Assembly: GCF_000150275.1 (NCBI RefSeq)
Contig: NW_002060957.1
Span: 1,352,445 to 1,416,444 of the forward strand
Origin: Trichoplax adhaerens
Taxonomy: Eukaryota; Animalia; Placozoa
Direction of reading: 5' to 3'
DNA: 64,000 nucleotides
Made by a program: the position numbers and the translations under genes. The notes under the pieces are model-generated. The model did not search any database. It saw nothing but the letters and a program-made list of their open reading frames with translations, and had not been told where the DNA came from. This document shows, piece after piece, positions 51 through 60,837 of this stretch. How positions within the stretch are numbered: position 1 is the stretch's first letter; every line of letters begins with the position of its first letter.

Positions 51-3000
51 TTAATAGCGACGAAATTGTTGTCTTCCTAAAATTTTCCTTGCTATCCTAA
101 CATGATGAAGAAAGTTTGATAATGCTTCGTATGCATTATACAAATTTCATACCTCCCTCATCGTCTGTATTACTTAGCGTGGCTAAATAAAATTCTTGGA
201 TTGTTGTATTGTCGCTGGTGATATTAGCTTTAGCACTGTTCGCGTACCAAAAATAGACTGTATTAAATCGAAGTTGCTTGAAGCTTATTCTCATAGTAGT
301 ACTTTTAACGTGAAACTTTCGTATAGAAGTTCGAAAGAAAATAATTGTCACACATTAGTTAGTATCTTGCCCTATAAAAATATATCCATTTTAACAATGC
401 CGCAGTGTAATGAATAATAGCATTAACTCTGTATGCATACATCATTTTGAAGAAAAAATTTTAGAAAGTAGGGTTAAAAACATCTAAATTTTATTATATT
501 AGAAACTAGTAACGATCTATTCAGCAAAACATTAGCTATTTGTACTGTATACATTCTTATTTAATGCTAATTCTAATTCAAAAAATCTTGAAAGTAAGCA
601 ATGCTGTTGATCTCTGCAAGTTTGCTTTTACCTTTCTAGGTGTCGTTGTTGAATCATTTTCCAAAAGGTAGAAATTGTACCAGTAGCTGATTGTACAAGT
701 AGCCTGTTTGAAGCAAATAAAATCTACGACTTCCTGATTATATCTAATGATAGTAGTACAATTTTTAAGCGGTTGTGGTTTAACTAGAAGAGTGAATAGC
801 AAAGATATAGTATTAAAGAGTGTCATTAGTAGTTGGTAACAGCTAATTTGTTTCGGACAAAATTCATGGATATAGCAGTTGTTGGATTGGCGAAAGTGAT
901 ATTTTTAATATTTGTAGTTCACAGTTTAACCGTAATTGAAAAAAGAATTGATTTTAATAACTTTTAGTGGAATTATGATGAAATATGCGGTAATAGACTA
1001 TGTTAAATTTTTAGCTTTATGTTTTAAATTTACTAAAATATTTTAATAGATTTTAGTGGTATTACTGTAGTGTGTTTAATTTTCACTGTAGTCTTGACAT
1101 ATTATTAAAATATGGATATTTTGTATTATACCAAATATAGATAGCTTTACAGTCTATTTCAAATACAGTACACTCAAACATAGCTCGTTATGTTAAGTTA
1201 TTCGCAGCATTTATGGCCTTCGCTGTTTCCTTCAATTATTCACTATTACTGTGTCTGCTTATGGTAAATTTCATATTTAATTCTACAATCCTGCTCTCTG
1301 CGTGTGTTCTTTCTCTTAATCTATAAATACTGGTGATTTCGGTCTCAAATTTATTAGTTGCATTTGTTAGTGTCTGTATCTGCACACATTACTTCACGAC
1401 AGCTTACAGTACATGACTGATCTACCAATAACTACCACAATGCAGCGTTATTATTTTCTACAATAAATATTCCTTTTTCTAGTAAATACTTCGTGTATTT
1501 ATTGTGAAATGTCTAAAGTTTCCACATCAACAGACTCTTCGAACCCTCCATCACAATTACAGTAATCAATGAACTTATTAACATCTAGGAATCCAAAACT
1601 CTCCTACGTGCGATGAAAATATAAAGGATAATACTATTATATGGTGTAAACTGAGTATGCTTCATTGTATCTAAAAATTGTTGAATCTGTTTAGGTGTAC
1701 TTGTTTCTATATCTGATAAACTGATATTGTGATAATCAATATGGTAATAAATTCATAAAATGCTTAATCTATTTTAAGAGATTTATAGATATTTCACAAA
1801 TCTACTTACATGAAATATTCGAAGACTTGTGACTGCAGCGAATTAGCGATGGTGATTTGGCTTGTTTATGATAATGAAATGAAGTTATGATTGTATAAGT
1901 TATATTAAATCCTAACCATTTTGGCAGTAGTTGTAGCGAGCAATTGGTTTGCCTAGTGATATTGCAAATAAATTTGCTGACTAAAGTAAAGCCTGGAGTG
2001 TGAACAAGATACCGAATTTGATATGCAACGGACTTTATGTAAGTTCTATCGATTTTTGGTGGGTGCCAATTAATCGACAAGCGGCTGCATGCAATGGTAG
2101 CGGTTATATTGGTTACTGTAGATGATGTTCCTACAATAAAGAGGAATTGCAAAACAAAGTTATTAAATATTTTCGTATTGGGTGTCACAGATAGTTTTAT
2201 GAGATGAATGGATGTTTTACTTTCGATAGGGCATTGATTATTATCATTCATAGTTATGGCAGGCGTATTATTGCTAACAGATGGACCTGCATACAGAAAA
2301 TATAGAACTTTATTTCGATCGTTACTTGAGAAACTTAAATATGGAGTATACTTCAATTTTACTCTCGATTTATATGCAACGAATTTAAATCAACAGCATA
2401 CATAAAAATTATTTAAATCATCTATCTGTTTGTAATAATTTGGAATAGATAAAAAATTGACTTTCTAACGTGTAGTTTTGGTAAATTATTCTTACCTGTA
2501 GGGCTAATCGAATTAGTGGTATGGACAATATTTGAACTTGTTACAGTAGTTGTATTAACAATAGATGGCGTTATATCTTGGGATGACGTTGTGGCTGCTG
2601 TTAATGCAGTTATACCAGCATTTTTTATTTCAAAACTAAAGATGCTGCTATTACTACTTAGTTCGCCGTATATTTCACTCTGAATGTACCAAATAAACGT
2701 CCCATAGCAATCCTTGGAGCACCCAATTTCCGCAAAAGTTAACTCCTTCATTATTTCTTTCTTCACTTTATACTATTAAAATATTTTGGCATATCTTTTA
2801 AATTCGGATAAATAATGTCTTTAGGAAATTTATAGTACTACAGTGGATTGTATTTCTACAAGAGAAAGCTTAAGGTCGATTTATGTCAGTTATAACCGTT
2901 ATAAATTAACATAATTTTTATTCCCGCAGCTACTGAAAGCCACAATTCATATTCCGCTCTGCTTATTATATATTTGAAGAGATACTTTCAAAATGGATGT

Positions 3001-6000
3001 CGATATTACTGTGATTAATCTTTCTCTGCTATAAAAATATAGTTACCTGTCTATATTGATCGCTGGAAAATTTTTCGTTAATGTGAAATATATATTGATG
3101 TTCCACTCCATCAAAGCAAGTGTCATGTTCTTCGCACCACAATAACAACTTTTGTTTATTGTAGATGATGTCGGTATGGCAATTCCTTGGAGCTTTTGGT
3201 GTAACTAAGTAACAAATCATCAAAACAGATTAAATTAGATTCATTAATAGAGTAAGATAATGCAGCACATTTATTGTTCATTTTACGTTAATTACAATTA
3301 GATATGTTATTAAAAATTCTCAAGATTTATTAGCATTTCTTGCATATACGCGTATGCTTTATAGAGTTTATTAAATGTATGGAATATTCAAAAATTTAAA
3401 CTGCTACCATAAATCACGTTGTTTAAAATTTTCTATTTAGTAACTGGTTGTATGCAGATAATTGAATTTCTGTTAGAGCCTTAGAAATTCATGTAATATT
3501 AGGATTAGGGTTTTTACACTATATCATATTAATTGTATTATTAATGTAAGAAACATACTATTAGTATCGGAGAAAAAATTTAATGATCATTATGTTGTCA
3601 TTCGAGAACAAAAATAATGGCTCGGAAGATTCCATTTATAAGATTGCAATGCCACTTCTACAGCTTTAATTTCTATCCGGTAAGTAATTGAAATTTACTG
3701 CATATTTGACTATCAATTAAATCTTACATTTCATAGCTGAAAATAATATATAAACTTCGCTGATTGAATTAAGCTTGTTGTTAGCAAGAGCCTCAATCTT
3801 GAACTTGAATGTTGCATCATTCCATTTTCGATTGATTGGAATAGTGCAAGCATAAGTAGTTGACCGATTACCATAATTACAGGCAGTACTCCACTTGGGA
3901 TCGCCTTTACTGGATCTGCTTATTATTACATATTGAATCCAGTAATGAATTAAAAATGAGCAATACCGCTGATTGGAAGGTGGGTACCAAGTAACTTGAA
4001 CATGATTACAGATAGTTCTAGCTCGAAGTTGAGTAACTGGTTCTAATAAATAAATCAAAGCTTTACTTTTTTTATCAGCTGAGGTGAATTAAATTTGTTA
4101 GATGATAAACTGCTACATATATTTCATTCGATACGGTTACCTAACATTTTACATTTGCTGTTTTTGTTCAGATTTAAACTTGTTCCTACAAAAATGATGA
4201 AAATTGTAATTTATAATGCTTACTGCTATAATGAACTAGAAATTATTTCTGTGATTGCAATGCACTAATTATTTCCTTCTCTATCTTATCAGATTTTGTC
4301 AAGAAAACTAAGTACAATGTAATAGCTGTTGTTCTACTACCTATAGCAGGTGCGTAGCGCTTATGTTATGTATAATAGATTTACGAGTATAAAGCTAAAT
4401 AATACTGTAAAATTCCGATTAGAAAACTTATTAAACTCCTTGTAATAATTCAAACTAGTATCCAATTAATATGTAAGCATCCTGATATCTATAAAATCTG
4501 ACGTATTGTGTTACTTTTCTACTATTTATCCTATGGCCATTAAACTGTAGCACATGATTCCATGCCCACTGCTTCAAGGTTTAATAACGAACAATATGAA
4601 TGTTTGTAAATTTTGCAAGTTTCATCATTAATGTTCAAAGTAAGGAAATAAGTAAGTTTTACGATGAGTTACGATGCACATTGTGATTGTGCAGTAATTA
4701 GTATTAGTGATGGTATTGAGAATCATTTTTAGAATCTGAAACCTTAATAGAGTCATTTGTTGTATAAATTTATCAGCTATCTAATCTACTTTTTTAAAGT
4801 GCTAATCAACAAAAAATTCGATCTTGTAAAGAGTATAGCATGAATAGTATAAGTGCACAGTTTCATCATCAGCAATCATGAAATTGGCTTATAAGCATAG
4901 TGCACTATTCTACTTCTTAATGCTAGCGTTCTTCAATTACTACTGTAATTATCTGAAACTATGACAATCCTAATAGCCACTTTTTACTGTTGTAATAAGA
5001 GGAGGGATGCAAATTCTTCTCCGTCAAGCATACTATCTATAAGCAATGCTTTTAAAAAGCAAAAATACGCTAATGTAACCTCAGAATTGAAGAGTTTGCC
5101 ACTGTATAAAGCTGACTAAACTATCTAAGGTATTTATCGCTTACTATCAAACCCTGTTTCTTGTAATATATGCTAATGCCACTTAGAGACAAAATTGACC
5201 TGTTCAAATGCTTTATCGCCGGTTTCTATAATTTCTTTACATATTGATATACTTTACATTGTACAGTGTACAGGCTTCGGCAATAATTAAGTTTCTGTAC
5301 GATAGGAATTTCCGACTGAATTCGACTCGCAATTAAAAGAGGAAATGTCACAAAACAGCTTTGCAACAAGATAACGTAATGTACGATCAATAAGTCAATT
5401 CCTTGAACCACGTATCAAGGAACGATATCTTCACTATCACAAACACTCTTGCTCTACTAGCAGACTACATAAAGACTTAAACGCCTCGTATTTTACGTTA
5501 AACACTAAGTATAAGAATCCCGTTTATTACACGACATACTGCATTTATATACTCTTCTCAGTAGTTCATGAGTCATAGTTAATACAATTAACATTGGAAT
5601 CGTTTACTGAATTAGATATTAATTTTAGCTACTGCTCCCTTAATGCAAACAACAATGTTTACGAACATAGACATGTAATGACTAATACAGAATAGTCAGA
5701 TTACGATATGTCCGTTCACGGAAAATTTCAATGATAATTTACAATCTACCATAAGTAAATTACAATCACAATGATTCGAACTGTAAGTAGATGATTTGCA
5801 TTTCCTATTATAACTATTAATTTCAGTTCGTGTATATGTGTCACTGTGATAAAAAGTCAGTACTATATTAAAACACAGTATATCCTAATTAGAAGTTAAC
5901 TAAATAAGGATAGTCTAACAGGATTATCCTAACATAGTTATTTCTACTCTAATACAGTATATAACACTATCACAGGAAAACTTTTAGTTTAGTGCACCGA

Positions 6001-6693
6001 TAATTTCTTAAAAAGGAGTATATATGAAAATTGGCATTGATATAACGCCTATGGATAGTATCTATTTTAATTATAATAATATAGAAGTCACTTTTATAAA
6101 TACTTCGGTAATAAGCAAAAGATACAGTATTTTGGACTCTATGAAAGTAGTTTCTGACTATTATTAAGTACTTGCATTAGTCATCTTCTCATGCTTGCGT
6201 ATATTTTTTCTCCGTTTTTGACTATCAATTTGCTCATTTTAACTGTATTTATTTGTATGTTTTCATGAGCATTATAATTAAGTTTCAATAGTAGTACTGA
6301 AGTCATGGCACAAAATATATAAGATTACTAATGACTTCAACATTGCTTTATCTATTACATAAAACCTGACGTCATTTTCTCACTCATGGATATAAAGTTA
6401 GAGCTTTTATAACGACATAGTAAAGCGAATGAGTCTTTACTAGAAATAAAATAATAGATTCGAAAAGATATCGAAATAGAAATTATGACAAACGTTTAAT
6501 CAGCAAAATATTTCTCCAGAATCTAATAGGTTTCCAGCCCTTTTTTCTAGCTATGTTCAAAGATTATTACTTTAAATTATACTGATATAATATTTTAATT
6601 TATAATCAGTTTATATTAATTCACGACTTTACCTCGGGTTAAACCAAGAACTAGAAAAATGATGAGCCCGAATGGTTTACTGTCTGTCGCCAT
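51..6693 (-). CDS. Receptor-family gene 1: secreted-type protein with two tandem FN3-pair (class II cytokine receptor-like) modules, ~527 aa
   Basis: Manual splice model, all GT-AG with consistent phases. Exons: 6693-6633 (signal peptide MATDSKPFGLIIFLVLGLTR), 4185-4141 (Cys micro-exon), 4042-3728 (D1: CNHVQVTWYPP..YWIQY..WSTAC..C), 3204-3047 (D2a), 2772-2496 (D2b plus S/T linker), 2286-2221 (Cys micro-exon), 2130-1810 (second D1: CSRLSINWHPP..CNITRQTNC), 783-632 (second D2a VKPQPLKNC), 315-153 (second D2b YFWYANS), 76-51 (GRQQFRRY-stop). Total 1584 nt = 528 codons. The last exon is uncertain and the gene could continue beyond the window edge. Confidence 0.72.
1066..1555 (+). mobile_element. 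Solo-LTR-like element, family B (490 bp)
   Basis: Starts TGTAG, ends TCACA, flanked by perfect 5-bp direct repeat ATTAC (1061-1065, 1556-1560). Contains TATAAA (~1322) and AATAAA (~1461). Homologous to 9979-10480. Lies in an intron of gene 1. Confidence 0.6.
5346..5974 (+). mobile_element. TG...CA element, family A, copy 1 (629 bp)
   Basis: Begins TGTCACAAAACAGC, ends TATCACA. Perfect 5-bp TSD GGAAA. Near-identical to 28106-28735 and to the reverse complement of 21894-22523. Lies in intron 1 of gene 1. Confidence 0.9.
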
Positions 6694-12458: not shown

Positions 12459-12905
12459 TGTCAAAAACAGCTTTGCAACAAGATAACGTAATATACGATC
12501 AATAAGTCAATTCCTTGAATCACGTATCAAGGAACGATATCTGCACTATCAGAAACACCTTTTCTCTACTAGCAGACTACACAAAGACTTAAACACCTCT
12601 TATTTTACGTTAAACACTAAGTTTCAGAATCCACTTTATATGTCCTATCACGGAACATTTCCACGATAATTTACGATCTATCATAAGTAAGTTACAATCA
12701 CTATGATTCGAACTGTAAGAAGATGATTTGCATCCCCTACTATAACTATTAATTCAGTATGTGCATATGTGCCACTGTCATAAAAATTCAATGCTATATT
12801 AAAACGCAGCATATCCAAATCAGAAGTTAACTAAATAAGGATAGGCTAACAGAATTATCCTAACATAGATATTTCTACTTTAATACAGTATATAACTTTG
12901 TCACA
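12459..12905 (+). mobile_element. TG...CA element, family A, copy 2 (447 bp, internal deletion)
   Basis: Same termini as the other copies. Perfect TSD GTGTG. Lacks ~180 bp of the central region. Confidence 0.88.
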
Positions 12906-13117
12906 GTGTGCCGTTACTGAATATGTCTTACATGTTCACTGTAACTACTTACTTTCGATAAAGATGCCTTCATTCTTCTTGTAAATAATGTAAATAAATA
13001 CTAGAGTTATCTTTACAATATCAAAAATCGTACGATAGCGATAACTAAACTATTTCCTTCCGGTAAAATGTAAGATCACGTAGATTACCCTATACTTCAA
13101 GCATTGTGTTAAATTTC

Positions 13118-16426: not shown

Positions 16427-19400
16427 TTATCCCACATTTATGATATCAATTGTTACACTTTTCACGGCATGCTTATTATCTACGGTCATTAAGCAATCAC
16501 GATTAGAATTGCTTTGGCAATCATATTTAACTTTAAACGAATTTTCCTGGTCAGTACTTATGTACTTGATCTGATACTGAATCGAAGATAGGCACTGATA
16601 GGCAAGACTGGGTGGACGCCAAAATAATTGTACATGTGTACAGTTGCTTTTAACTCGAATATTCGTCGCTGCAGGCGCGTTCTCTACGAAGTAAAGTGTA
16701 AAACCTTCTAAGACAAGTTATGCCATTAAAATGAAACTAAGCTATTTATTGTTAACATCCGATATCTACTAATCTGTAGACTTTTCCTAACTTACTTAAT
16801 TGACTGCAATCTATTTTTTGCTTTCCCGTCGTGAAGTACGTTTGACTTGGAATAGTAGTTTGAGGAGTAGGCAGTGTTGTCGGCTTTGCTTGACTTGTAT
16901 GGAGACTATCGATCTTAAATTGTTGTAGTGTACTGTTGTCGCTGACTTTATTATCATATTTCATCGCACTTGCAAGCCAATGATATGTAGTATCCAATTG
17001 CAATTCGTCAAATTTAAGGAATAAATTTCTTACGTCCCTAATGAACTATGTTAACGTCCAATTAGAATTAGATTAAAATCTACTTCTACATCTGCTAATC
17101 CGTCAGATTGGCAAGTAAATCTGCATGATCATATTTTTAGTAAATTATCAGCCAGATTATTTTTTTATATCTTTCAGAGATTATAGTATGGTGTTAAGGT
17201 AGGAATTGGAAACTTGGAATATGAAAAGATGCTATCATAATTTGTGCAATTTTATAATGGAATTAAATATATATGTATGCACAAAAATAGGTATCTCCTA
17301 ACAATTACTACATTTATAGTATTATTACTTGAAAGGTTCTTCCTGATTTATTTCCTTCAGATAAAAAGAAGTGATAATGGTAGCTTGCACCATAATAGCA
17401 TCGATCATGTTGATAGCAGGTTAATTTTACTGTTTCCTTCTTATAGTCAATAAGACTTCGACATTCTTTAGGTGGAGCTGGTTCATCTATAAAATAGAAT
17501 AAAATTTACTGCTACCTAAAATAGAATGACATCACATATGATCTAATTTATATGGCTTACACAGCATATTTGGCCAAGTTCTGTAAAATGCGCTAGTGGA
17601 GTGGTGGCGATTGTCGATTGTGCTTGCCAATACTTGATAGACTAAGGTAGAGCCTATTTTCCTTCCATCAAGAGTAATCTGGCATTGGGTATGAGAAGTT
17701 TTATTGCAGGCATATTTCCAATCAGTATTGCCACTAGCAGAATAAATTCTATAGTATATGCCATATTGAAGGAAGGGTTGGCAACTCGAATCTACAGCTG
17801 GTGGATCCCATGTAAATGTGATGCGAGTGCAATCAATTTTAACTTTCAGGTTTTTAGCAGCTTCTAAATTGTCTAAAGAAATAATGGATTATATTATTAA
17901 AGACGGAAAGTTTAATTCATTTATGGAATAAACATAATAAAATATGTGGCATTTGATAAGCCAAAACATTTGCTCTTCAACTTTTCAACATTATCTTGTG
18001 CGAAAGAGTGCTAATTGAATATTTCGAACAATATAACATAACATTTCAAAAGACACTGGAGTGGTTTATTAATATCATTTTTATTTGTGATTAACATTAA
18101 ATTTGCTAGAAGTAAGACGAAATGTTAGCATGAGCATACCTACCTTCAATGTAGTAAATTTGTTTACATAAATAAAGGGTAGCAAATCGTTCTAAATATA
18201 TTTCATAGGGTAAAATGAAATGTTATCTAAAGGATTAGAGTTACTAATGCTATCTTCATCGTAAACATTCTAGATATTATATTTACCTACGGAATATTAA
18301 TTTAAGGATTTTAATCAACTTAATATAAAACTATGTTAAAAAAAATATTGAATGAATTTCTTGTGACGTATTTGAATATGCAATCTGCTAGAATAAGCAT
18401 TCAGTGAAATACGTATTCGTAAACAGTTTTGTGAATCCTAATACCGCTTTCAGTTGCTAAACGAAATTATTTCTTAACAATTAAGTTATAAGTAAAGCTA
18501 TTTGTTATAAAAAATCAACTGATTATTCTGTAATACCACTTTAAGTCTGCAATTTGAGTACGCATACTAATGCATATTATTAGACTAAAAAATTACTTAC
18601 ATGTTTGAGCAGTATTCTTATCAGTAATAGTTATCATGTTCTAGTATACACAGTAAAAGGCGCAATCTACATTTACTGTAAACTAAAGTCATTACTAAAA
18701 AATAATTTCACATCGCAATGCAATGAATTCGCCAAATATCATGTATTTTAAATCAGTAAAATATGGGCTAAAAAATGATGTCATAGGATTGACCAACTCT
18801 CGAGTTTGACCGAAATATATGTGCAGTATGTGAATAATAGCAACAATGCCGACTTGTATTGTCTTTATATACATAAGTATGCACGCATGCATGCTACAGC
18901 TAAAGCTGGAAACCCCTTTCTTATTCCTCTATAAATAGTTTAAAGACATATACGTATATGCGTAAAATAATATTTATCCATTTTGAAATTTCGGTTTCGC
19001 TCAAACAGCTTGTTGTCAAATCGCACGTGAGTGTTAAATGCTAATTATTGACATAAATCTTCATTAAGTTAAAGCTCGAAATAAGAGAAAAATTTTTAAA
19101 GTTTTGGTTTGCTTGCCTAATTTTTTACTGCAATGCGAGCGAGGTACATCTTTTGTAGCCACTGTAGTTGGAACTTCAGTCGTTGCCATCGAAGAATGTA
19201 AAGAAAAATTGAATTGAGGAGTGAAATTGCTTTCGCGATTGCTGTAGGTCTTACTACTAGCATACCAATAATAATTTACTTTGGCATTTAATTGAGAAAA
19301 TTGAATCACTTTAGTTCTTTTGCCATTCAGCGAAAACTGTTATAGAAAAAGAAACATTTATTATTATAATTTAGAAGTCGGCATTGCTCTTACACAGTTT

Positions 19401-28735: not shown

Positions 28736-29214
28736 GTTACCAATAGCTATCGTCTTTGTTCTTTCGATGTTTGTGCTTAAAAACTCTGAATTACATCGCT
28801 TGCACAAACTTAAACATTTTGATAGGTCAAGTTAATATTTACTCGTACAGAGTAAAGTAAGATTCAAAGTTCCGTTCGAAATGTTTATTAATTAGTCAAT
28901 TCACAGAAGTTTCAACTTTTTACAGTACATTATAACAAATTCTAAGGATGTGTAGCTATTACGTTAGCATTTTACTTATGGATCGATGAAATCGAATGTG
29001 TAATTTGGCGATAATACCTTAAAAGTGTTACTGTAATAAATGCTAAATAATTTGTTGCCTATCATACTTTTACTCGAGACTTTTCACCTTGAGTTTGCTG
29101 CAGCAATTCTTAAATTATCAAGAACGCGTAGCAAATTAAAAGTCTTAATAGAATCGATTGGGTTCTTTCGTTTCTTGAGTAGCCTTTACTCTGCGTACCT
29201 CTACTATTGCCTAA

Positions 29215-32200
29215 TTAAGCACATAGAATAGGATGCGTTGTAATGGTAATTTCCTTACTGATCGGTTCCATATCTCTGCTACAAGACCAAGTCAAAGAAG
29301 GATGAAGATTAGCGTCAACAAATAAGCCATTCATTTCCATATTTTTGGCGGTGATTTCTTTTACGTTTACTTCTGATTGAGGAGATTTTTCACGTAACGT
29401 TTCTTTCAATTGATTCTTTATTATTGTATCTTCTGACTTTATTGATGAAGTGTAATTTTCAACCGATTCTTCGTCTACGCTCGAATTGCTAGATTTCAAT
29501 TCTTCATCTACGTTGTCCCATTCGTTACTCACTATTTCAGAATCAGCTCTTCCAAGCGACCAACAGAAAGATGAATAAGTTACAGTTTCCTTAATAGCGC
29601 TGATTTGTTCCTCTACGTTTTGCTCCGGTTGATCATGATCATTAGGTAATGATGCTGCTAATTGATTCCCTTTGCTCAGATCTTCTTGAGTACTAGTTTC
29701 TGGGAATGAATGGTCATTATGATCTATGCTTGATTTGTGTCCTGTAACTATTTCTTCTATATGACTGCAAACACTGGTGTTTCTATTGGACTTGATAACC
29801 ATTTTAAGAGGTGGGTTTGTAGTATTATTTTGATGGATGGTAGGTAGACTAGTTTGAATATTATTTTGCAATTCGCTCCATGTTGAAACATTTCGAGCAC
29901 TACGATTTATAGAATATCGATTCGGTGTACGAGGACTACTCCTACTGGAATTGATACCTTCGATTTGATCGCTGTTTTCTGAATTATTGTCGGGATTGTT
30001 AGAAGTACTGGAAACTTCTCTTAACAACATCCCTATCTCAGCGTATGCTGATTCTGGATCATCTACGGTGACTTGAGTTAATGTATAATTTATTTCATTA
30101 CTTGATGAGACAGTAGGTTTAGGTTTTGCCTTCTTCTTATGTAACCATTTGAAGTAGCTTATAATGACCAAGACTGCAATAATGATTGCAGTGATGGCTA
30201 CCAATATATATGGTATTAGGATTGATATAGAATGCTGCGGTTCTATTGAAATGAAAAATAATGCAACAATTACTTTAGTTATTGTAGCTTTATCTTTATT
30301 TAATCATTAAAATGATTCGATATCCTTAATGATATTTATCCTTGTCTGGAAAGCAATGTATTATAAATAGTTTACAACTAGTTCAGTGTAATATTTCGAT
30401 ACCTGTCGAGCCAGAAGAAAGCAATAGCTGAGTAACAGTTGATTCATCAGAAGTAAATAAGTTCTCTTTAGTTATAGGAGTAGTTGCTAGTCCTTCGTTA
30501 ACTTTCACCGTAGATTTTGGTGTAAGCTTCCATGTATCTACTATTTTATTATCCTTCAAATAAGTTGAGGAGGGTGAAGGAGCTGTAGGGGTTAAAGTTG
30601 CAGTATTCTGTATAGCCATACTAGTAGGATTTTGGAAATTACGGTCAATAATCGATGTAGTAGTATCTCCATGAACTTGATGAGTTATCCAAGTAGTTGT
30701 CGATAACGTTGTAGCATCATTATTGTCTGCATTGTCAATTTTTGTAGACGAAGGGCTACTTTTAGGGATTGATATTGAAGATAAACTCATCGTAGGCTTG
30801 TTTGAATTTAGACTTGCTTGAACTGGCTGAATACTAAAATTAAACTTACTCGTATTTGCACTTTTAATATTATACTCTGACTCTGCATTGGCAAACCAAA
30901 AGTACTTTTGATTCTTAGAAAAGGGGTTGAGATGACATTGAATGCTTCCACTATGAACATTCTAAGGAGCAACATAGATACAAAAGCAATATTCAGCAAG
31001 TTTAGAGCCGCTAAAGGGTAATGGAATAATTTGCAGCTGAATGCCTTTTACAAAAATGAGACATGGTACTTTCATGTATTGATAGGAAATATAAATGGTT
31101 ATCTGTTCAAGAATGCTTATTGCATCAAGCAGATCCGGATTTGATTATGTGCTACTTATAAGCCACAGTAAATGTAAATAATTATCTGCACAGAAATTTT
31201 TATTGTATCGAACTGATCTGGGTATTATTAATTAAGGTAGTTTAATATTCATGTTAATTTAAGTTACCTTCTGTAATAATTTGACCTCATTATTCACCAT
31301 CAGGTAAAAGTTATAGGTATAATCGATTAAGTAATAGCATGATTTCCTTTTCTGGCAAGTAAATTGGATAGCTTTTCTCCTATAGTCAACGAAACTTTGA
31401 CAAAGTGGAGTTTCCGGCTGAACTAAATTTTTATGTAACCAAAGTTGCAAATAAAGCTTAGTCTATTAACAAGTTGATTGGTTTTATACCGCTTACTTAA
31501 TGCACAAGTTTTTGTACAGACTTGACTACGTAAGATACTTATTTAACCGCGATATTGTTCGGATATCACTGAAATTTAAAATAGCAAGATTTAAGATCTT
31601 TTAAGTTACTTACAGCGCTTATAAGGTAATATCGTGTATTGATCGGATAAAGATATCATTTTATTTTCAGAAAGTAGCATTATCCGATAGTCAAAAACTG
31701 GGCTATTCAGATTTCTTGGTAATTCTATCGTACACTTTGTTTCATTCGTGTTATAGCAAGCCAGAGAAGAGGAGATACTTGCAGTAAATGACCAATATTT
31801 ATATTTAACAGCGTAGTGCAAGCGTCTGATAGGTAAACATTTAGAATTATTCGATGTACGTGACGTCCATGATATTGAGATTCGATTGCATATGACAGAA
31901 ATCTTGATATCATCAAGAGCAATGTTTGAAACTGGTTTAAAAAAGAATTAACGGTTATTAGAGTTTCGTCGATAAATTAAAAATTGGAAGTACTTTACGG
32001 CAACCAGAATCTACTCGCAATATAATGAAAAATTTCCAGTTAAATCAGCTTTTTAGCTCTTAATTTCTATGTTATATTAAACTAGTGGAGAAGTCATTTG
32101 AAGATTACGATCATTAATCCTAAGTTCCGAATAAATGGTATCCGGTTAAATCACCCAACTTAGCCCTTAAAAGTAATATATTAAATTAAACTAGCGTAAA

Positions 32201-34678
32201 GTCACTTAATGGTTCTCATCAAATTTTAAGTTCCTTATGATTCATAATTAAACCTAATTTACGGCTGAAGCCTATTTCTTCTGTCAGATAATCGGATAGG
32301 TTATTTCACAAATTAAATTTATTATTAACGTTGCATTACTATCAGTGCTATGTGGGATAGAACTTGACGTAATTTTTTACCGTAAACTATATCTTAGCAC
32401 TTGAAATATCTAATTTTACTTTTAGGAAATGGGCTCATAATGTAATGGATTGCATGTGTGTGCGTATAATACGCACACTCAAGAAGCGAAAAATTTTTCG
32501 AAAATGGTAAAGCGCATACACTCTATAAGACAAGGAGAAATGAACATGGCTAAATGTTTAGCCAGGTCTGATAGAATGCCTCTCATTATTAGAAATCGTA
32601 CTGATCTCAAATTACGAAGATATCTCCTTGATTACTTTTACAGGTAATTGGAATATCACTAAAACTGTAATATTATTTTAAATTAGGTTAAAATCTATAG
32701 TGTTTGCTTACAATCATTTCCTTATATTATGCGCATTGAAAGGCAGTAAATGTTGTAAAATATCTTTCACGAGTTTACTAACTTATATTAAAACTTAGTT
32801 TAGAAAAAATTCGTAATAGGTTATATGATTGTTTTACCAGTATTTAAAACGCACAATTTTCGAGTAAAATTGAATATTTTAGCTTTACTTTACTGCACTG
32901 CAAATAGAATTTTGTAATAAATGTTTGAGCTTCTAGTCCATTTATGCTACACCCTAATTTATTTATATAATTGACGTAATGTTTGGTTTAAAACTCAAAA
33001 ATAATAATAATAACCTAACAATAACAGGTTAATTATAGCATGCAAGACTCATTTCATGCTAACTACCATATCAAAGCACATTTCTTATGAAATAGATAAG
33101 TTTAAACCAATTATTTCGAAAAGCTAAACTTTGCACTCGTTCGAAAGTAGAAATGGATTTAATGTGAAACTATTTAAATTGGAATTAATTTCTATTGTTG
33201 CACTCTATACAATAATAAGTTAGGAATAAAAAAAACAATATAATATTACTGCACGTTGAGTTGGATATACTAATGAAGATTCGTAGATTTGCAGTAGCTA
33301 TCCAAATCATGCACTACGTGGTTTGGACGTTTGAACAGTACGTTATATTTACTCGCAAATTGAAGAAATAAATTAATACAGGACCGAATAAAAGCTTACC
33401 TTTAGGATTGCATGAAGAGCTGCCAGGAAGATTCTTACTCCTTCCTAAGTAGGCGGTTATTCAGATAGAAATTGTGGCAAAAGATTCAAAATTAGTTTTT
33501 GCATAGTAATATAATGACTTCCTATCAGAAAATTCAAAAGCATCGTCTCCATAATGAATATGTTAAAGGTGCTTTGATTCATTAATCTAACGTTCTAATT
33601 AGTTTCTGCGGCTATCATATATTACTTTATTATTTACTATTAAAATGTGATATAAAATTCCATAATTTGTAGAAAATTAGAACTTTACTCGATCTTTATA
33701 CAACGATTACGTATACACGACTCTACTGTAGCTGAATATGACTACTAGAAAGATTTCTAGAAAATAATTACTAAATAGTACTATAACATTAATTGAATGT
33801 AACATTAACTAATAAGAATAGTTACTAACATCAGTACAGAAGGATTTATATTAGTACAGAGACCTTATCTTAATTGTGTTAATGTCAGCAACCTTATCTA
33901 ATAAGGAAATCACTAATGTGTAATATACGATGTGTAGTGTGAATCACTAATAAATAAGATCGTTGTATATAAGCCATTTTTTATTTATTATAGTTTAGTT
34001 CCTTAATTGCTGGTCTTGACGCTGATCTCTCAACAAACGTAATAAAATAGCCTATTATTATCTAGCAACGTATAGATTACTGTGAATTTGATTACGTGTA
34101 TAGAGTTGCCTGCTTACATATTGTACTTTTTGTAGCGTTTATAGCTACAACCAGCATTGCAATATACTACTTTATTTTACAATTATCACATTACTTAAAG
34201 TAGTAATAACATTTAAGCTGAGCAGCTATAATCCGATATGATAACAGCTAGAGTATTGACGCAGACGTGATTTCTATCATCCAAAGTACGACAAACCAAG
34301 TCCTAATGCATGAGTTACCTATATATTATTACTACTAGCAACAAAATGAACTCAAAATCCTACTAAAAAGGTAATCTATACTCTATCATGGAATCTTTAA
34401 TTATAGTCCATAGTTATGAGCCTTTAATTAAAAATGCTTTATGACAAAAATAAAAAGCTACGCTACTGTACAACATGCTAAATATGATTAATAAGTAACA
34501 ATTCGATATTATATTACGCTAAGTATGATACACGAGTGCATAACAACTTCAATGATAATAAAGTACCAGCTTTTGCAATAGATCGGTATTGCAAAAGTAT
34601 AAAATAATTCTTAATTGCCTTACCTGAAACTATGAATGACCATCCAAGCATAACTGCTAAACCTAATAGCAATTTCAT
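29215..34678 (-). CDS. Receptor-family gene 3: type I membrane protein with one FN3-pair module, mucin-like stalk, TM and ~310-aa cytoplasmic tail, ~719 aa
   Basis: Exons 34678-34624 (MKLLLGLAVMLGWSFIVS), 33444-33400 (Cys micro-exon, 45 nt as in gene 1), 31931-31614 (D1 CNRISISW..YAVKY..CYNTNETKC), 31422-31268 (D2a), 30961-30403 (D2b YFWFANA plus S/T stalk), 30242-29215 (TM ILIPYILVAITAIIIAVLVIISY, KKK stop-transfer, tail). Total 2160 nt, open throughout. Confidence 0.82.
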
Positions 34679-39350: not shown

Positions 39351-42300
39351 TTATTCTACTCTATTTTCGATTGGATGAACATTAGTCAAGGATAAGATAC
39401 TTTGGGAATCATAGTTACTATCATCTGACGATTGATCAGACCATTTATCAAGTAGGCTAAATCCAGAAATATCATCGCAATTACGCCATGTATAGGAATA
39501 TTTAGCATAGTTTTCATCAAAATATTGAAATAGTGAATTCGAAGAGTCCGTTCGCCTAGCAGAATCCATACTTAAATCTCTATGATACCTGTTAGAAAAC
39601 GGGAAATTTTCATAGGCTGGAAGCCTAGTTAACGAACCAATATCTGCAACGTTGCTATTTCCAGCGGAACATATTGCAACTTCAGAATTGGAGTAAGTAA
39701 TCCTTGAAGTAAATGGATAAAATGTTAGAGTTACATTACTAGGAAATGATGCCAGTGAGCTATTAATATCTTGTTCGTTAATATCTATAGCATTGACATC
39801 GGTAACTCGATAGCCTTCCGTCAATCTTTTATCATCTTTAGTACCAGTCTCAAAATTAGAATAACTTCTCATGAGTCGATTATTGTTCATATTACTTATT
39901 CCAGGTAATCTGTTAAAATTTTCAGTTGTATCGAAATCTTGGAACTGATTTTTTGCAAAGGGTAAATCGTAGTAGGAATTTTCTTTCGCATCATTAACCC
40001 CGGTTTCGATATTGGAATAACATCTCATTAGTCCATTAATACCCACATGAATTAATGGAGGCAATCTGTTAGGCACAACAATTCCACCAGAAGTTCGAAA
40101 TTGATATCTTCTAAATGAAGAGCCATCATTGAAGATTCTCTCAGTTTTTAAATCGTTGTGGAAGTTTCTCACGGTATGATTCACTTGCTCTACTGTAGGA
40201 GCATAATTATTGATGAGCATCTGTTGAAATAAATCAGTATACCCTATGGATAGATTAGAAGATACATTTTTTTGTCTAAAAGCGGCAAACTGGGCTTGTT
40301 GGTCATCATTTTTATTAGTGAAATCAAGACTGGCAGAACTTTCTCGATTGTTGATAGGCCTGTTTTGTAGATTTTCTTCAATATTTATAGCTACTTTTCC
40401 ACCCTTTTGTCTATGTTGTAATTGATTATCAACACGAGATAAGATCGCGCTTTCGTAGTTAACTTGTATAATGTTATCAGATAGACTTGCGGTTGGATCT
40501 ACTTGCTCATTATTTTGATCTTCATTAGCGTTATTTCGATTTAAACAAGGATTTCTTAAACTATATCCGTTTTGCAATTGATCAGCCACTCGAAATGGAG
40601 CCACGCTCTTGTTCTTATCTACATTGCTATTAGGTAGATTTGTGATTCGATCCATTGGGATATCAACCTGATTTTTATCAATATCTCCACTATTTTTACA
40701 AGGATAGCATACAATTACATGGTTAGCAGATCTATCGGCAATATTCGTTTTTACCTCGTAAGAATTTTCTCCATTGCACTTGCTTATGACGTTTTTAGTC
40801 GACTGTTGTACATAGCATGCTAATATAGAGAGTACAAATAAAATACCCAATAGGACAACTATTATAATATAACATCCGATAGCTGAAGGTGCCGAAGTTC
40901 CTATAGATATTCAGAATGAAACAAGATATAGTCGTCTCTGCTAGCTTTCTATTCAATTAGAAGACACTTGATAATCAAATATTCTTTGCCTCTGAGGTCT
41001 AATAAAAGAACATCTAAAATTAATCGGTCTCTTACCAGTTGAAATTGTTGACCTTGTTGTAGTTGTCTTACTCGTGCTTGTATCTGTATTTTCATTATTC
41101 TTGCTATAAGTAGCTCGCCTAGTTTCTAGTAACATTTTAAACAATAAATGATGATCATATTACTTTTCAAATATTTGAAAGATATCACAAATTATATTGA
41201 TTTTGAAGCTCTTCTAGAAGACACCATCATCTAACAATATTTATGATATTTATGATATTGCTGTAAAATCTATACCTGCAGTATTTGACATAGTCCATGC
41301 TTTAGAACCTAAATCGTTGATGGTAGGCCTGATAGTCTTAAGTAATTTATAAGGAATCAAAGTTGAGACCTGACTTTTTCTCGGAGTAGTATAGCCACCC
41401 AAACTTGGTGTATAGCCTATATCAAAATTGAAATTAAGATACTGTTATATAAACATATTTCTCAAGATTGCGTAATCATAGAAAGAGCAATCATAATTTG
41501 ATTACTTTAAGCCCAGCCTATACTACGAAGTCCATGAATTATATTAGCTATAATTTGTCAAAATTTTTATTAATACTTTGAGATCAAGTTGATAAGTATA
41601 CGTATGATAACATCTTTAATAATGTAGTTAAACAGCTCCATGATTCCACTTAAAGTCTAGTGTATTCATTTAAATAATGACCAATTCTGGATTAAAATAG
41701 ACTGCTTAATTTGTAAAATCATCATCCACTTATAAAAACAGCTGTAAAAGTATAGAACAACTATCGGTTGAAATTACTTAATTCCATTTGACCATATTTC
41801 AATTATTAGTAGCAACATATCACTTTAAGATCACATATGAGCTACTACTGCCAGTCTGCAATACTGGCTAGTATTCATATGAAGGGTGAGAGGACTAATT
41901 TATACTAAAGATAATAATTTATTTAAGAAAGCCACTAGATATTTTATTTTAGAGAAACTTTACCATAAACCGTGAAATCTTTAACGTCTTTAACTAGAAT
42001 CAATTTTGTAGCTATACAAGAAATCGCTAGCCATATCAGCTGAATGCTTAAAGTACTATTAATGGCATAATAAAAGTTATTACTTGCTATTATTGGTTTC
42101 CCTGCAGATTCAATTGGTACTGGTGAAATATCTGGATATAGCCATGGACATATGATTGGCCGACATGGAAAATTGGTATTCTCATCAGTAGTAGCAGAGC
42201 TCCTCGTTTTGGTCGCAGTCGCATCAGGTTTTATCTCACTTCTCTCGTTAGATGGGATACTAAATGACCATTTCGTGGTATTATCACTAACTAATTGAGA

Positions 42301-45300
42301 TGGGGCTTTGGTATTAGCAAACCAAGAGTAGACTTGATTAAAGTGAAACTGATTAAATGGACGTTGAATGACGCTAATCTTACTATCCTGTAAAAGATGA
42401 ATACAAAGAAGCTAGTGAAAAATCCTCAACTAGATTTCCGCGTTGTATTGATTAATGATATATAATTTATTCTATGAACCACCAGTAATGATGCGACTAC
42501 TCTCAATCTGCTTTAAGTTATCTAATTATAGTTATCTTAGCATAGTGTATAATATCGTATTTTATACATTTTTAATATTGAATGCGATAACGTACATGCC
42601 TTTGAAAGATGTAGAAGTTAACTAATTAAAATATACTAGTATTACGGAAATATTGGATACAGAATTTTTAGAGCCTGCACTTGTATATTGCAGTCATGAA
42701 TGTGGTCACTACATCATTTTTCTCATAGTTTTAATTTAATAGTTCTACTTCAACGTAATTGATTTCCTATTCCTAGATACAGCTCTCATCATGACCATGA
42801 AATAATATTAAAAGACACACTATGGTCTCACCAATTGAAGCACTTGAGTCCTGTCGTTATTGATCAAGTAAAAATTATACATGTAATCGCGTTTGTCAAA
42901 GCAATCCTGTGATTCAATGCATTGAAACTTGACTACTTTTTCTCTAAAATCAATAAGTGTATTGCATATTTGCGGAGGATCGGGTTTAACTAGTAAAATT
43001 AGAAGAAGATTATTAGGAAAAGTCATTTACTCTAAATAAAGTAAGAGTCATCGTATACTTAATAAAAATGAAAAGCTAGTTTTTATGTAATATTATAATT
43101 GTCTGCTTGCTCATAAACTAGAAATCTGATAATTTAAAACTAGCGAAAGCAATTGATGAATGTAATCAAAATCATACTATAACCTTTAACTTATATCATG
43201 TCTAATTAATGAACAATGAATTATAATTAGCAGCAAAGTTAATAATTGCTTTTCAGTACGGTAGAAAATATTGGCTAAAACATATTGAAAATGTGCCACT
43301 ATTCAAAGAAGATATCTTTTCTATAAGCTAGTCGACTGACTATTACGTTCATGTGTTGCATTTTCTTCACTATAGCTATCAAAATCGACTGGTGGCTTTA
43401 GAATCTAATAGCAGGAAAATATTCATTAATTTTAGGATTATTTTACTACAGCGGTAACTTGTCAACGTTAAAGAGCAGGTATATCCTGCTAATGCAACGC
43501 TATGTCTGAAGGTCTAACATGCAATCAATTAGTATCAGTTTAAAGCTTTAAATGCGACTTTCCATCTACGTAATCATTTCGCTTAGTTATAATGAAAGAC
43601 TGATATTATAAATTTGAATAGCAATGATCTTACATTTTTTTGGAAGATCTATAATGGATGAGTCTGTCATATTGACTTTTTGACCGTTATACATGGTCAC
43701 AATTTGATATCGAAATGTTGGAGCATTCGATGCAACAGGCAGAGTTATTTCGCATCTATTGTTGTTCATCTTCTTGCAGGAGAGTGATTTCATACACGGA
43801 ACGAAGAATCCATGACATGGATATTCAATAGAGTATTCAACGAATTTCAAGCACTCAAAAGGCATATCAATGGGATGATTCCATGTAATTCGCAGTCGAT
43901 TGCATTGGAAAACCGTTATAATATTAGCTGCAACACCTATTTTATTCTTAGCTAAAAATATAGGACAAGTCGTTGTTACTAATAAAATTCGAGTAAATTG
44001 AATTCTATGAAACGAAATATATGACTTCAATAGTGAATAAGCCTTGCTGTGAAATAACTATGGGATTTTGGGCAGTCCTAGTTTTAAAGTGGAAAAAAAT
44101 GTCCTAATACGTTTCAATAAGTCTCATATTATAAGATATAGTTACTGTGTAATCTTTAGTATTCCTCAAATGCGTGTTTAACCAGATCATAAAAGCAACT
44201 TACAATGCATTACTTTCTGAATTTATTTTAGATTTAGAATCAATACCTAGATGTCACAAACCAGCTTTGTGACAAAAGTAACGTAAAACAAATTTCTAAA
44301 TTACTAAGTCTCCGGGATTCAGTATCCCGTAACCACCTCACAAGAATTTGGACGCTTTTGCTTTTATGTTAAAACAACTATAAAACTCTTCTTTCATTCA
44401 ACTATCTACCGAGCTTAAATACCTTTGGGCTGCAACTATCATGTATGATTCATAACAGTTCATGCAATTTTAGCTCATATAGGATAGCTAAATTAACACA
44501 GACATTAATCATAATTTTGGACATGTACTGAACGATTCTAGATAATTAGACTACAGTATGTCCACTCACAGAATTATTTATAGTGTCATCCATCATTGAA
44601 TATCTTCAGAATATTCATCACAAGCGTTACAAGACATAACACTATAATCAATTAATATTAGTTACCTTATGAGAACTCTTACTACAATACAGCATAATTT
44701 GTTGTAACCAAAATAATAACTACTGTAGTTTTTACTGTAAGTCATCATTAATTATCTCCATATATAAATGTTTAACACTAAATTTAGTCATTTACTCTTC
44801 ACTATGTCTCGTACTATGACTCTAGAACTATAATGTTGTTAGGACCAGATTAGGGGAAGGATTAAAGCCTGCTAAAAGTGCTACACAGTTTGATTACTTT
44901 GCAGCCTCTTACTACAAAATTGAGATACTGAAAAACAACAATGCAACGTCTTGCTTTATCAAAATCTAATAGAGTCCGCTTTAATTTTAATGCAGTCTCA
45001 ATTTCATTGGATAGATTTTTACTAGAGCTAGACCTTAAAATATGGGTAAACCTTCTTGGTTATTCGTACACTGTATATCTACAGTAGTTTATTTTGGTTG
45101 GTATTCATAAGACCTGATAAGTTTTGACATGGCTCAAGGGTCACTTTGAAATAAAGTATATTACACTAGGTAATCGAAGATAAGCAGATTTGAATAACTT
45201 CTAAGCCGTCGGTCTCTCTCTAGGTGGTCTTATAATTAATTCAACTAATGAACCATAGAATTACAACAATGTTTAATATTGTTTCTTGCAGCAAAATTTG

Positions 45301-46850
45301 TACAGTATTGTAGTGTACGAGTTCTTAATCTACTATACTATCACTGCATTTCCGTAACACGTAACTACTGTAAATAGCTGAAATCATTTGAAGTATGTAC
45401 TGATTGTCTTTGCGATGACATAATATTAATATCCTACATTTCGAATATTTAGATCAATAAAATACATCAATGTAAACATCTTGGTATGGATACTACAAGT
45501 CAACAAACACCAAATTGATCACTCATTATTTTGCTTAGTCCTGCGAATGCTTAAGTCTGATATAATAACTACGGCGATGATAATTTGTTTGAATTTTATA
45601 AACAGATTGAGATGTTGTTCCAAGCTCATCTATTCAAGTCATGATGACGTTATGATTAAATAATTTTGGACGTCTATTAATCTATCTTTGCGAAAGCATT
45701 AAAATACTCATTGCTATCATAATTTAATGATATGGTATGTACTGAAATCTTTTATAAGTTATGATCAAATTAAATTAAATGGTTGAAGTAGTTCACTTTA
45801 ATAGCTGAAATCTCTATATCAACTGTGCTAAACGATATAAAATAAGGAAAATTTAGGACAAAACTAATCTAGAAAAACAATAAATGACGACGCATGTTGC
45901 ACGAGAATGCCAATTTTGTGTTATATATTAATATTAATGAAATAGGCTATATTCTTATTATCTTTCTACTATTCTTGATATTTTAGTTATTGGCAAAACA
46001 ATTTGGAAAATATTTCCAGTGCTAAATCGAAATTTAAACTTACCCAGATCGCAGTTAGTCCTAGAAATTGTAGTATCGCCTTATTAAAAGAGAATAGAAA
46101 TTATACCTTGACATCATAAGACTAATGTAAACTGACAATTGCAAACTTAACATTAAACTGAATTGATAGGGCAAGCGTGAAGTAGTCACATTAAAGAACT
46201 TTCGAATTGAGTATTTGAAATTATATGTCTAGATCACAGTAGGCTTATCTTATAAGTACATTGAATAGTAATTGGTACTTTTGGTATTCAGGGAAAATGC
46301 TTAACGATGTAAGATGATTTAATTTCGTAAATTTCTTTTTAATCTATCGTAGATCTCTCTGGATTGAAGTCATTCGTACGACAATATTTTCTGCCATAAC
46401 CAGTTACCAATTCCATTGAAAGAAAAGTGATCAATTTTATTTGCTTCAAATAATAAATGCATTGCGGTCTAATCTGTACCTTTATGGTAAATATCTAATT
46501 TGATTCATTTCTAATAAAAAAATTTATTCTCTCAGTTTGATAATTTAGTTATACGCTCAATTTTATTTAGATGGTTTATTGATGAAATCTTCTATAATAG
46601 TCTCTCATTAAATATCTTTCTCTCATTCAACTAGACGTAGCTCATTGTCCTACGGCTTCTTCGTTACTGAAGTTACTGATAATTAATACAAAGGAGCTGA
46701 TCAACACTTACAATTAAATTCCTATTACTTCGACGATCATATTCAAGTTTCGCTGTTATATCATAATTAAGTTAGAATTCACACCCTACCTGAACTTTCA
46801 CCAAATGACCGAGTAATAGCAACAACAGTTAGCATCAAAATCTGCCACAT
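39351..46850 (-). CDS. Receptor-family gene 4: type I membrane protein with one FN3-pair module, multi-exon stalk, TM and ~485-aa Tyr-rich tail, ~895 aa
   Basis: Exons 46850-46790 (MWQILMLTVVAITRSFGESS), 46079-46044 (Cys micro-exon DTTISRTNCDL), 43951-43634 (D1 CNRLRITWNHP..YSIEY..CKKMNNNRC), 42989-42832 (D2a VKPDPPQIC), 42387-42084 (D2b YSWFANT..SDNTTKWSFSI), 41993-41964, 41416-41276, 41125-41036 (stalk), 40900-39351 (TM AIGCYIIIVVLLGILFVLSILACY plus tail). Total 2688 nt, open throughout. Confidence 0.8.
44252..44821 (+). mobile_element. Divergent family A relative (570 bp) in an intron of gene 4
   Basis: Starts TGTCACAAACCAGCTTTGTGACA. Internal match to family A (gacatgta..g..ta..agactac..tatgtcc..tcac.gaa). 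Flanked by CTAGA on both sides. Confidence 0.6.
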
Positions 46851-60719: not shown

Positions 60720-60727
60720 GACAAGTT

Positions 60728-60816: not shown

Positions 60817-60837
60817 ACACGAGTACGCGCACTCTGA

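Follow-up and report, generated by a model that had tools for sequence, protein, structure and literature searches.

The window analysed here is a stretch of 64,000 nucleotides of the placozoan Trichoplax adhaerens with a GC content of about 30% (C1400:1352445-1416444 in the genome-wide searches, which covered an assembly of 105.6 Mb in 1414 contigs). Its minus strand carries four tandem genes, TRIADDRAFT_60476 (gene 1), 60477 (gene 2), 60478 (gene 3), and 60479 (gene 4), whose products contain paired fibronectin type III (FN3)-like domains, D1 and D2, resembling those of cytokine receptors. The original prediction had described a locally expanded cluster of class II cytokine-receptor-like genes in an apparently non-bilaterian animal. 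The placozoan source agrees with this, and the local expansion is seen as a tandem cluster of four genes with a shared exon plan. The proteins of the cluster were identical to the T. adhaerens models TRIADDRAFT_60476 to 60479 and shared 99-100% identity with models of Trichoplax sp. H2 (TrispH2_002987/002988), in which the orthologues are intact. These public models are uncharacterised and named merely "Fibronectin type-III domain-containing protein". No published description was found of TRIADDRAFT_60476 to 60479 or of a placozoan class II-like receptor. As genes, the members of the cluster were not undescribed, since public models exist; what is new here is their interpretation as cytokine-receptor-like. 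The cluster is a real T. adhaerens gene family, expanded in placozoans and similar to cytokine-receptor homology modules.

Domain exons were searched singly, and whole-protein analyses were performed on the public gene-model proteins P0004, P0045, P0001, and P0002. P0004 and P0045 are full-length models of genes 3 and 4, respectively, and both showed 100% identity to the window. The public model of gene 2, TRIADDRAFT_60477, is a fragment, and exon skipping or mis-splicing was detected in several public models of the family. In the predicted proteins, a signal peptide is followed by a short N-terminal piece that bears a Cys and by one to three D1-D2 modules; beyond these lie a stalk rich in Ser/Thr, a single transmembrane helix, and a disordered Tyr/Ser-rich tail without a kinase domain. 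D2 is encoded by two exons, D2a and D2b. The exons mapped in the window are as follows.

46791-46850 (-): gene 4 signal-peptide exon, begins at ATG; hydrophobic Met-start segment, identical to the N-terminus of P0045
46048-46074 (-): gene 4 mini-exon with N-terminal Cys, upstream of D1; mapped from P0045
43634-43951 (-): gene 4 D1 exon, intron phases 1/1; motif scan and alignment
42832-42989 (-): gene 4 D2a exon, phases 1/0, bearing the K-P-D-P-P hinge and three conserved Cys; P0001 and P0045 use the same junction
42084-42387 (-): gene 4 D2b exon, phase 0 acceptor; FN3 part to ~42241, the remainder being stalk in public models
41034-41414 (-): gene 4, two Ser/Thr-rich stalk exons (~41277-41414 and ~41034-41123); mapped from P0045 and P0001
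39354-40898 (-): gene 4 transmembrane segment and disordered Tyr/Asn-rich tail of 486 amino acids, no kinase domain
34625-34678 (-): gene 3 signal-peptide exon; tblastn of P0004 against the window
33404-33439 (-): gene 3 mini-exon with N-terminal Cys
31614-31931 (-): gene 3 D1 exon, phases 1/1, without Pro after Trp; 100% identical to P0004
31268-31422 (-): gene 3 D2a exon, phases 1/0
30403-30961 (-): gene 3 D2b exon and Ser/Thr-rich stalk, phases 0/1
29218-30242 (-): gene 3 transmembrane segment (helix 386-414 in the AlphaFold2 model) and tail of 311 amino acids with the motif S-A-Y-A-E-I, similar to an immunoreceptor tyrosine-based inhibitory motif (ITIM)
20895-20948 (-): gene 2 candidate signal-peptide exon, inferred only
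19860-20183 (-): gene 2 D1a exon
19512-19669 (-): gene 2 first D2a exon
19196-19336 (-): gene 2 first D2b exon (FN3 part)
17561-17872 (-): gene 2 D1b exon, the highest-scoring on Tissue_fac within the window
17329-17486 (-): gene 2 second D2a exon
16796-17045 (-): gene 2 second D2b exon and linker
16436-16683 (-): gene 2 D1c, truncated third D1 of 82 amino acids, no G strand, stop at 16430
6634-6693 (-): gene 1 signal-peptide exon
4142-4183 (-): gene 1 mini-exon with N-terminal Cys
3728-4078 (-): gene 1 D1a exon, C-x10-C variant
3047-3204 (-): gene 1 first D2a exon
2496-2772 (-): gene 1 first D2b exon and stalk
2222-2287 (-): gene 1 inter-module linker exon with Cys
1810-2130 (-): gene 1 D1b exon, without the second conserved Cys
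632-783 (-): gene 1 second D2a exon
153-315 (-): gene 1 second D2b exon; in P0005 the gene continues past the window start with transmembrane and tail exons

Six-frame motif scans detected seven copies of D1 and six of D2, all on the minus strand, and recovered at the expected sites the four paralogs and the Cys, Trp, and Tyr patterns reported for their seven D1 copies. The Cys of C-x6-W was located at positions 43904, 31890, 20142, 17831, 16642, 4010, and 2089. The D1 of gene 3 lacked Pro after Trp, reading W-T-S-R, and the single C-x10-C copy was D1a of gene 1, both as predicted. In an alignment of the seven copies over about 103 residues, C14, W21, Y36, Y40, C55, and C63 were invariant. When twelve copies from elsewhere were included (19 in total), C55, C63, and Y36 remained invariant, and C14, W21, and C30 were nearly so. 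The C-x7-C pair was present in 19/19 D1s, with a spacing of x7 in 18 and x10 in gene 1 D1a. D1 also carried two extra conserved Cys, and a further Cys was found in the N-terminal mini-exon; within D1, a Cys comes after the Trp of C-x6-W. The paralogs were only 20-43% identical, yet these conserved Cys, Trp, and Tyr residues were retained.

Each D2a exon began with the hinge K-P-x-P-P, followed by three invariant Cys (C-x12-16-C-x4-7-C), predicted to lie on strands A and B and in the B-C loop, and by Y-x-Y-N-F-Y (pattern Y-x-F/Y). This signature was found six times, always on the minus strand and directly downstream of a D1; the rest of the window had none on either strand (none on the plus strand). 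The six complete D1-D2 modules of the original prediction were therefore all recovered, the seventh D1 (16436-16683) being truncated. The D2b exons follow each D2a and share Y-x-W-x-A and S-x-N-T ... F-x-I; the WSXWS motif was absent from all six. A hinge of the V-K-P-x-P-P type, which had been taken as a mark of cytokine receptors, was present; however, K-P-x-P-P is no class II mark, being a generic way for FN3 domains to begin as well as a linker of the class I type.

All six modules followed one exon plan: phase 1, D1 (a single exon), phase 1, D2a, phase 0, D2b, phase 1. AG/GT sites fitted the predicted junctions, which in genes 3 and 4 were those of the public models, and the domain exons of the window (7 D1, 6 D2a, and 6 D2b) were open in 19/19 cases with AG/GT in the expected phases. 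Genes 3 and 4 contain one module each, gene 1 contains two, and gene 2 contains two and the truncated third D1. Class II receptor genes have intron phases 1-2-1-0-1-0 (PMC8863823; bioRxiv 10.64898/2026.05.30.728932). Compared by phase, the module array 1-1-0-1 differed from the class II array 1-2-1-0-1 in the absence of the phase-2 intron within D1, and the transmembrane segment and tail shared one exon. The family had been proposed to include membrane and soluble members. Transmembrane segments were found in genes 1, 3, and 4, which agrees with the first part. In gene 2, the window scan detected neither a D2 nor a transmembrane exon downstream of D1c, which is negative evidence only; since no such transmembrane exon was found, a soluble product is possible but unproven, and gene 2 may encode a secreted or decoy form.

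A search of the genome with the D1 profile revealed at least 14 D1 copies in two clusters. The second cluster (C1404:2017512-2050845) contained at least six copies and included TRIADDRAFT_59604 and TRIADDRAFT_59606. As a sequence pattern, the recurrence of D1 is far beyond chance, because the profile of the seven D1s recovered these seven in the whole genome at E-values of 1e-28 to 1e-38 and also recovered the second cluster. The public model of TRIADDRAFT_59606 leaves out half of a D1 exon as well as a D2b exon, both intact in the DNA; public databases already tag this protein with PF01108. At C1404 ~2030636-2031018, one D1 copy shifts frame after Y-Q-V-H-Y-D, and the same stretch occurs on an unplaced 1.8-kb contig, C729. 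An intron within this copy, corresponding to the phase-2 intron of class II genes, was considered and rejected, as the frame was shifted and no GT/AG sites were present. This copy is a pseudogene or an assembly error.

On Pfam profiles, Tissue_fac (PF01108; curated cut-off of 27 bits) matched 8/19 D1s at an E-value of 0.1 or better, and fn3 (PF00041; cut-off of 25 bits) matched 1/19. TRIADDRAFT_59606 reached 30.2 bits on Tissue_fac, above the cut-off, and D1b of gene 2 scored 27.6-27.9 bits with flanks and 26.9 bits when trimmed; the remaining D1s scored 16-24 bits or gave no match. The best fn3 score in the family was 17 bits, below the cut-off, and no D2 matched fn3, as compared to 53-59 bits for canonical Trichoplax FN3 domains; even so, the predicted fold is FN3. 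When the profile of 19 D1s was compared to PDB sequences (177,635), D1 domains of class II receptors made up 11 of the 19 matches, with marginal E-values (IFNGR2 0.009, IL-20RA 0.012, IL-22RA1 0.019, and IFNAR2 0.11). In the profile alignment, the C-x7-C of the family was in register with that of IFNGR2, a point in favour of the original class II reading. The preference of the D1 profiles for class II D1 domains is weak but consistent. In the Pfam check suggested with the original prediction, Tissue_fac led for D1 (8/19, mostly below the cut-off), Interfer-bind gave nothing on D2, and fn3 stayed below its cut-off.

The AlphaFold2 model of gene 3, built with a 19-row family alignment, showed two beta-sandwich domains at residues 38-240 with a predicted local distance difference test (pLDDT) value of about 90 and a transmembrane helix at 386-414. 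C92 and C100 were located on adjacent predicted strands, 87-95 and 99-103, which by their order are C' and E. In tissue factor and IFNGR2, the D1 disulfide (C-x7-C) joins strands C' and E, and the putative bond of the Trichoplax pair would lie at the corresponding place. In a Foldseek search against PDB, the gene 3 model superposed best on class II receptors, with template-modelling (TM) scores of 0.76 for IFNLR1 (root-mean-square deviation (rmsd) of 3.6 Å), 0.72 for IL-22R1, 0.71 for IFNGR1, and 0.64-0.69 for tissue factor. Class I receptors scored 0.56-0.60, and the FN3 pairs of DCC and neogenin scored 0.42-0.44 with an rmsd of about 10 Å. An unbiased VIA-align structure search of 48,161 chains gave IFNLR1 with Z 13.4 (2.9 Å over 185 residues), IFNGR2 with 13.1, IL-10R2 with 13.1, and gp130 with 12.9. 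Class II matches had Z values of 13.1-13.4 and an rmsd of 2.9-3.7 Å. The first 36 rows were all cytokine receptors except for three single-domain matches, and tandem domains of fibronectin and titin were about 2 Z lower (11.0-11.2). In the ESM Atlas, the features of gene 3 were nearest to the clusters of IFNGR1, IFNAR1, and IL-22RA2 (0.91), and an independent ESMFold model had TM scores of 0.72-0.74 to IFNAR1, gp130, and IL-22RA2. As anticipated by the original prediction, tandem FN3 beta-sandwiches were predicted, and the top structural matches were cytokine receptors rather than generic FN3 proteins. The prediction that the D1-D2 ectodomain forms the bent two-FN3 elbow of the cytokine-receptor homology module is robust; for the modelled module, class II is the leading sub-assignment, though an insecure one.

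The predicted tails of genes 3 and 4 hold no domain. Short Tyr motifs were found in the tails: gene 3 has the ITIM-like S-A-Y-A-E-I, gene 1 has V-T-Y-E-P-I, and gene 4 has Y-D-S-Q (YxxQ), 20 residues from the C-terminus. Such motifs often arise by chance. Two similar stretches that lie about 50 residues from each other in the tail of gene 4, L-M-R-C-Y-S-N-I-E-T-G and L-M-R-S-Y-S-N-F-E-T-G, form an internal duplication, and TRIADDRAFT_59604 likewise ends with a Y-S-G-Q motif. STAT_alpha matched two loci of the genome above its cut-off. In a possible mode of action, a secreted protein ligand would bind the D1-D2 elbow, binding would bring receptor chains together, and the Tyr motifs of the tails (ITIM-like and C-terminal YxxQ) would dock cytosolic kinases and SH2 proteins, STAT-like genes being present in the genome.

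The four genes are best explained as encoding type I surface proteins with D1-D2 modules that most likely share an ancestral module with class I and class II receptors, with D1 closest to class II and D2 diverged or of another type; our confidence in this explanation as a whole is middling. True kinship to vertebrate cytokine receptors is likely. A number of results weigh against it, or against its class II form. None of the sequence statistics was significant at database scale. A control domain, a canonical Trichoplax FN3, scored 23.6 bits on Tissue_fac and 58.9 bits on fn3; because a canonical domain reaches this value, sub-threshold Tissue_fac scores are unspecific, and what counts is only that Tissue_fac ranks higher than fn3, together with the two scores that pass the cut-off. 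Interfer-bind (PF09294) matched neither the D2 exons nor the full-length models, and a six-frame search of the genome found it nowhere in the family. The D2 exons had no Pfam match, and the D2a and D2b profiles gave no usable match among PDB sequences. In class II receptors, the D2 disulfide lies in the second half of the domain (Cys186-Cys209 in tissue factor); conserved Cys were absent from D2b, which is the second half of D2, and therefore this disulfide is missing. The phase-2 intron that divides D1 in class II genes is also absent from the family. Against 1.84 billion representative proteins, the D1 profile yielded 39 matches passing an E-value of 0.001: family members, short unnamed ENA/Logan fragments in which the D1 is likewise a single exon, long proteins with many FN3 domains, a tandem-FN3 protein of 262 amino acids, and one repetitive false positive. 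No class II or other vertebrate cytokine receptor was recognised among these (the library entries are nameless), and kinship to known receptors is therefore not established by sequence alone. When five aligned family members were used as the query of a word-indexed protein search, the only match was the first sequence of that alignment itself. On the structural side, class I and class II receptors were tied in Z, with IL-4R alpha reaching 14.1 when the Foldseek list was re-ranked; gene 4 was placed by the ESM Atlas with generic fn3 by features and with class I receptors only by structure; and the angle between the domains is predicted, with a shallow alignment of 19 rows behind it. The model of D1 alone (pLDDT 91.5) had mixed FN3 neighbours (neogenin, titin, NCAM2, ROS1, and LAR within 1 Z of cytokine receptors), so the D1 fold alone is not diagnostic. 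As to signalling, no Box1 (P-x-x-P-x-P) was found beside the membrane in the tails, and six-frame searches of the genome found no Jak1_Phl, JAK FERM_F2, or STAT_bind domain. The blanks of these genome searches are weak evidence, those for the JAK domains because the exons are short.

Two other genomic matches to Tissue_fac were rejected. One is the source of the control FN3 domain, an ordinary membrane gene of the adhesion-molecule type with Ig and multiple FN3 domains (C1414:1397000-1403000); the other is broken by stops.

A stronger version of the class II reading would make the genes true class II receptors, directly sharing ancestry with interferon, IL-10, and tissue-factor receptors, with helical class II-type ligands and a JAK-like kinase with STAT, and would place the origin of CRF2, the family of class II cytokine receptors, before the placozoan-bilaterian split. 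This is doubtful. Class II receptors headed both the Foldseek TM scores and the unbiased Z ranking and had the lowest rmsd, both Cys of C-x7-C are placed on predicted strands C' and E and are in register with the pair of IFNGR2, and Tissue_fac is over the cut-off for TRIADDRAFT_59606 and borderline for D1b of gene 2. The lack of WSXWS, the phases 1-1-0-1 against 1-2-1-0-1, the placement of gene 3 by the ESM Atlas beside IFNGR1, IFNAR1, and IL-22RA2, and the STAT-like loci in the genome point the same way. However, D2 has neither Interfer-bind nor the conserved Cys of the second half, and carries three other Cys instead; D1 has two extra Cys; the hinge is of class I or generic type; class I receptors are tied in Z; and gene 4 is class I-like or generic. 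Neither Box1 nor JAK-specific domains were found, the phase-2 intron of D1 is missing, and the E-values are marginal, the best being 0.009. For the class II assignment originally proposed, the best superposition, the register of C-x7-C in D1, and the absence of WSXWS held up, and the lead of Tissue_fac, mostly below its cut-off, and the intron phases, without the phase-2 intron, fitted in part, whereas the tie with class I in Z, the dissimilar D2, and the class I-like or generic gene 4 did not fit it.

It is somewhat unlikely that the genes form a lineage-specific family of FN3-pair surface proteins unrelated to cytokine receptors, serving adhesion, self/non-self, or microbe recognition, in which the Cys pair and the elbow are convergent or an artefact of predictor training. 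The mixed neighbours of D1 alone, the margin of just about 2 Z over ordinary tandem FN3 pairs, the 23.6 bits of a generic Trichoplax FN3 on Tissue_fac, the lack of a significant receptor match at database scale, and the clustering of gene 4 features with generic fn3 would all be accounted for, and fast divergence of paralogs (20-43% identity) with tandem expansion is typical of recognition families. Against it, two predictors (AlphaFold2 with an alignment and ESMFold without) and two paralogs gave the cytokine-receptor elbow with TM scores of 0.7 or higher. Moreover, Tissue_fac exceeds fn3 in the family, the reverse of generic FN3; the weak PDB matches are enriched in class II D1 domains, whose Cys pair is in register; and the intron phases match the cytokine-receptor array apart from the missing phase-2 intron. 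It is hardly credible that the exons are gene-prediction artefacts or relics in decay or without expression (pseudogenes): one copy of the second cluster is frameshifted, gene 2 ends in a truncated D1, and several public models are mis-spliced, but 19/19 domain exons are open with AG/GT in phase, Cys, Trp, and Tyr are kept despite 20-43% identity, the orthologues are intact in Trichoplax sp. H2, and the AlphaFold2 models are confident.

We compared the family with known systems. Vertebrate class II receptors (IFNLR1, IFNGR1/2, IL-10R2, IL-22R1, IL-20RA, IFNAR1/2, and tissue factor) are likewise type I membrane proteins built of D200 units of two FN3 domains. They share with the family the best superposition, C-x7-C in D1, the lack of WSXWS, occurrence in genomic clusters, and a similar phase array, which in the family lacks the phase-2 intron; the tandem modules of genes 1 and 2 resemble the four-domain IFNAR1. 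Differences from class II receptors are a D2 without Interfer-bind or second-half Cys, a single-exon D1, extra Cys, a transmembrane segment and tail in one exon, and the fact that no Box1 or JAK was found. In structural alignments with class II receptors, identity was only 11-15% over the two domains together, and that of D1 with tissue factor was 26% at most. Class I modules (IL-4R alpha, gp130, IL-13R alpha, prolactin and growth hormone receptors, and Drosophila Domeless) have the same bent pair of FN3 domains (Z 12.4-14.1) and the K-P-x-P-P hinge, and all neighbours of the ESMFold model of gene 4 were class I; however, the D1 of the family lacks the four-Cys pattern with C-x9-10-C-x-W, D2 lacks WSXWS, and superposition on class I modules gave a higher rmsd (3.3-5 Å) and lower Foldseek TM scores (0.56-0.60). 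Ordinary tandem FN3 proteins (fibronectin, titin, neogenin/DCC, and receptor tyrosine phosphatases) have the same single-domain fold with the core motifs W-x-P-P and Y-x-V-x-Y, but their domain pairs superposed worse (TM 0.42-0.44, rmsd ~10 Å; Z 11.0-11.2), and the family scored 17 bits or less on fn3. The proposed early class II receptors BjCRFB1 and BjCRFB2 of amphioxus (bioRxiv 10.64898/2026.08.17.745176) and the CRFBs of lamprey (bioRxiv 10.64898/2026.05.30.728932) were found by FN3 architecture and superposition, not by sequence identity, and are supported by functional data; the lamprey proteins have the Tissue_fac and Interfer-bind pair (bioRxiv 10.64898/2026.05.30.728932). The reported TM scores of the amphioxus BjCRFBs were 0.40-0.57, as compared to 0.64-0.76 for the Trichoplax gene 3 model. 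The amphioxus and lamprey CRFBs are chordate proteins, whereas the Trichoplax family lies outside Bilateria, is known from genes and predicted models, and lacks Interfer-bind.

The surroundings of the cluster contained several other features, and no part of the window was flagged as resembling human sequence. The flanking genes had been predicted as DNAJB11-like and MCRS1-like, and their DnaJ/DnaJ_C and FHA domains were confirmed: window positions 55377-57188 (-) encode DnaJ and DnaJ_C (DNAJB11-like), and 61429-63797 (+) encodes an FHA domain (MCRS1-like). A dispersed repeat of about 435 bp was found in spacers and introns of the cluster at 28301-28736, 21894-22328 (inverted), 5541-5975, and 12638-12907, with copies 89-97% identical; it may have aided the tandem duplications. 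Between the cluster and the DnaJ gene, positions 49929-50255 (-) hold an open frame of 109 amino acids that has a tail rich in Ser and Asn, a strong transmembrane segment, and no family match; it may be a gene for a small membrane protein. Between the DnaJ and FHA genes, the stretch ~59900-60900 contains T-V-L-Y-C-T-V-Q-like peptide repeats in several frames on both strands and is probably a short tandem DNA repeat.

Reviews place canonical JAK and the assembly of the cytokine receptor/JAK/STAT pathway in Bilateria (PMC3670263, PMC12026705), and basal chordates are the deepest lineages to which class II receptors have so far been followed, in amphioxus and lamprey (bioRxiv 10.64898/2026.08.17.745176, bioRxiv 10.64898/2026.05.30.728932). 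It is possible, though unlikely, that placozoans have a working pre-bilaterian cytokine system, in which the receptors of the cluster would be true kin of the interferon/IL-10/tissue-factor type, would bind secreted helical proteins, and would act through phosphotyrosine tails on STAT-like factors by means of a kinase other than canonical JAK. If the cytokine-receptor interpretation of the family is true, the origin of the two-domain cytokine-receptor architecture moves before the placozoan/bilaterian split, and TRIADDRAFT_60476 to 60479, 59604, and 59606 would be concrete receptors for testing.

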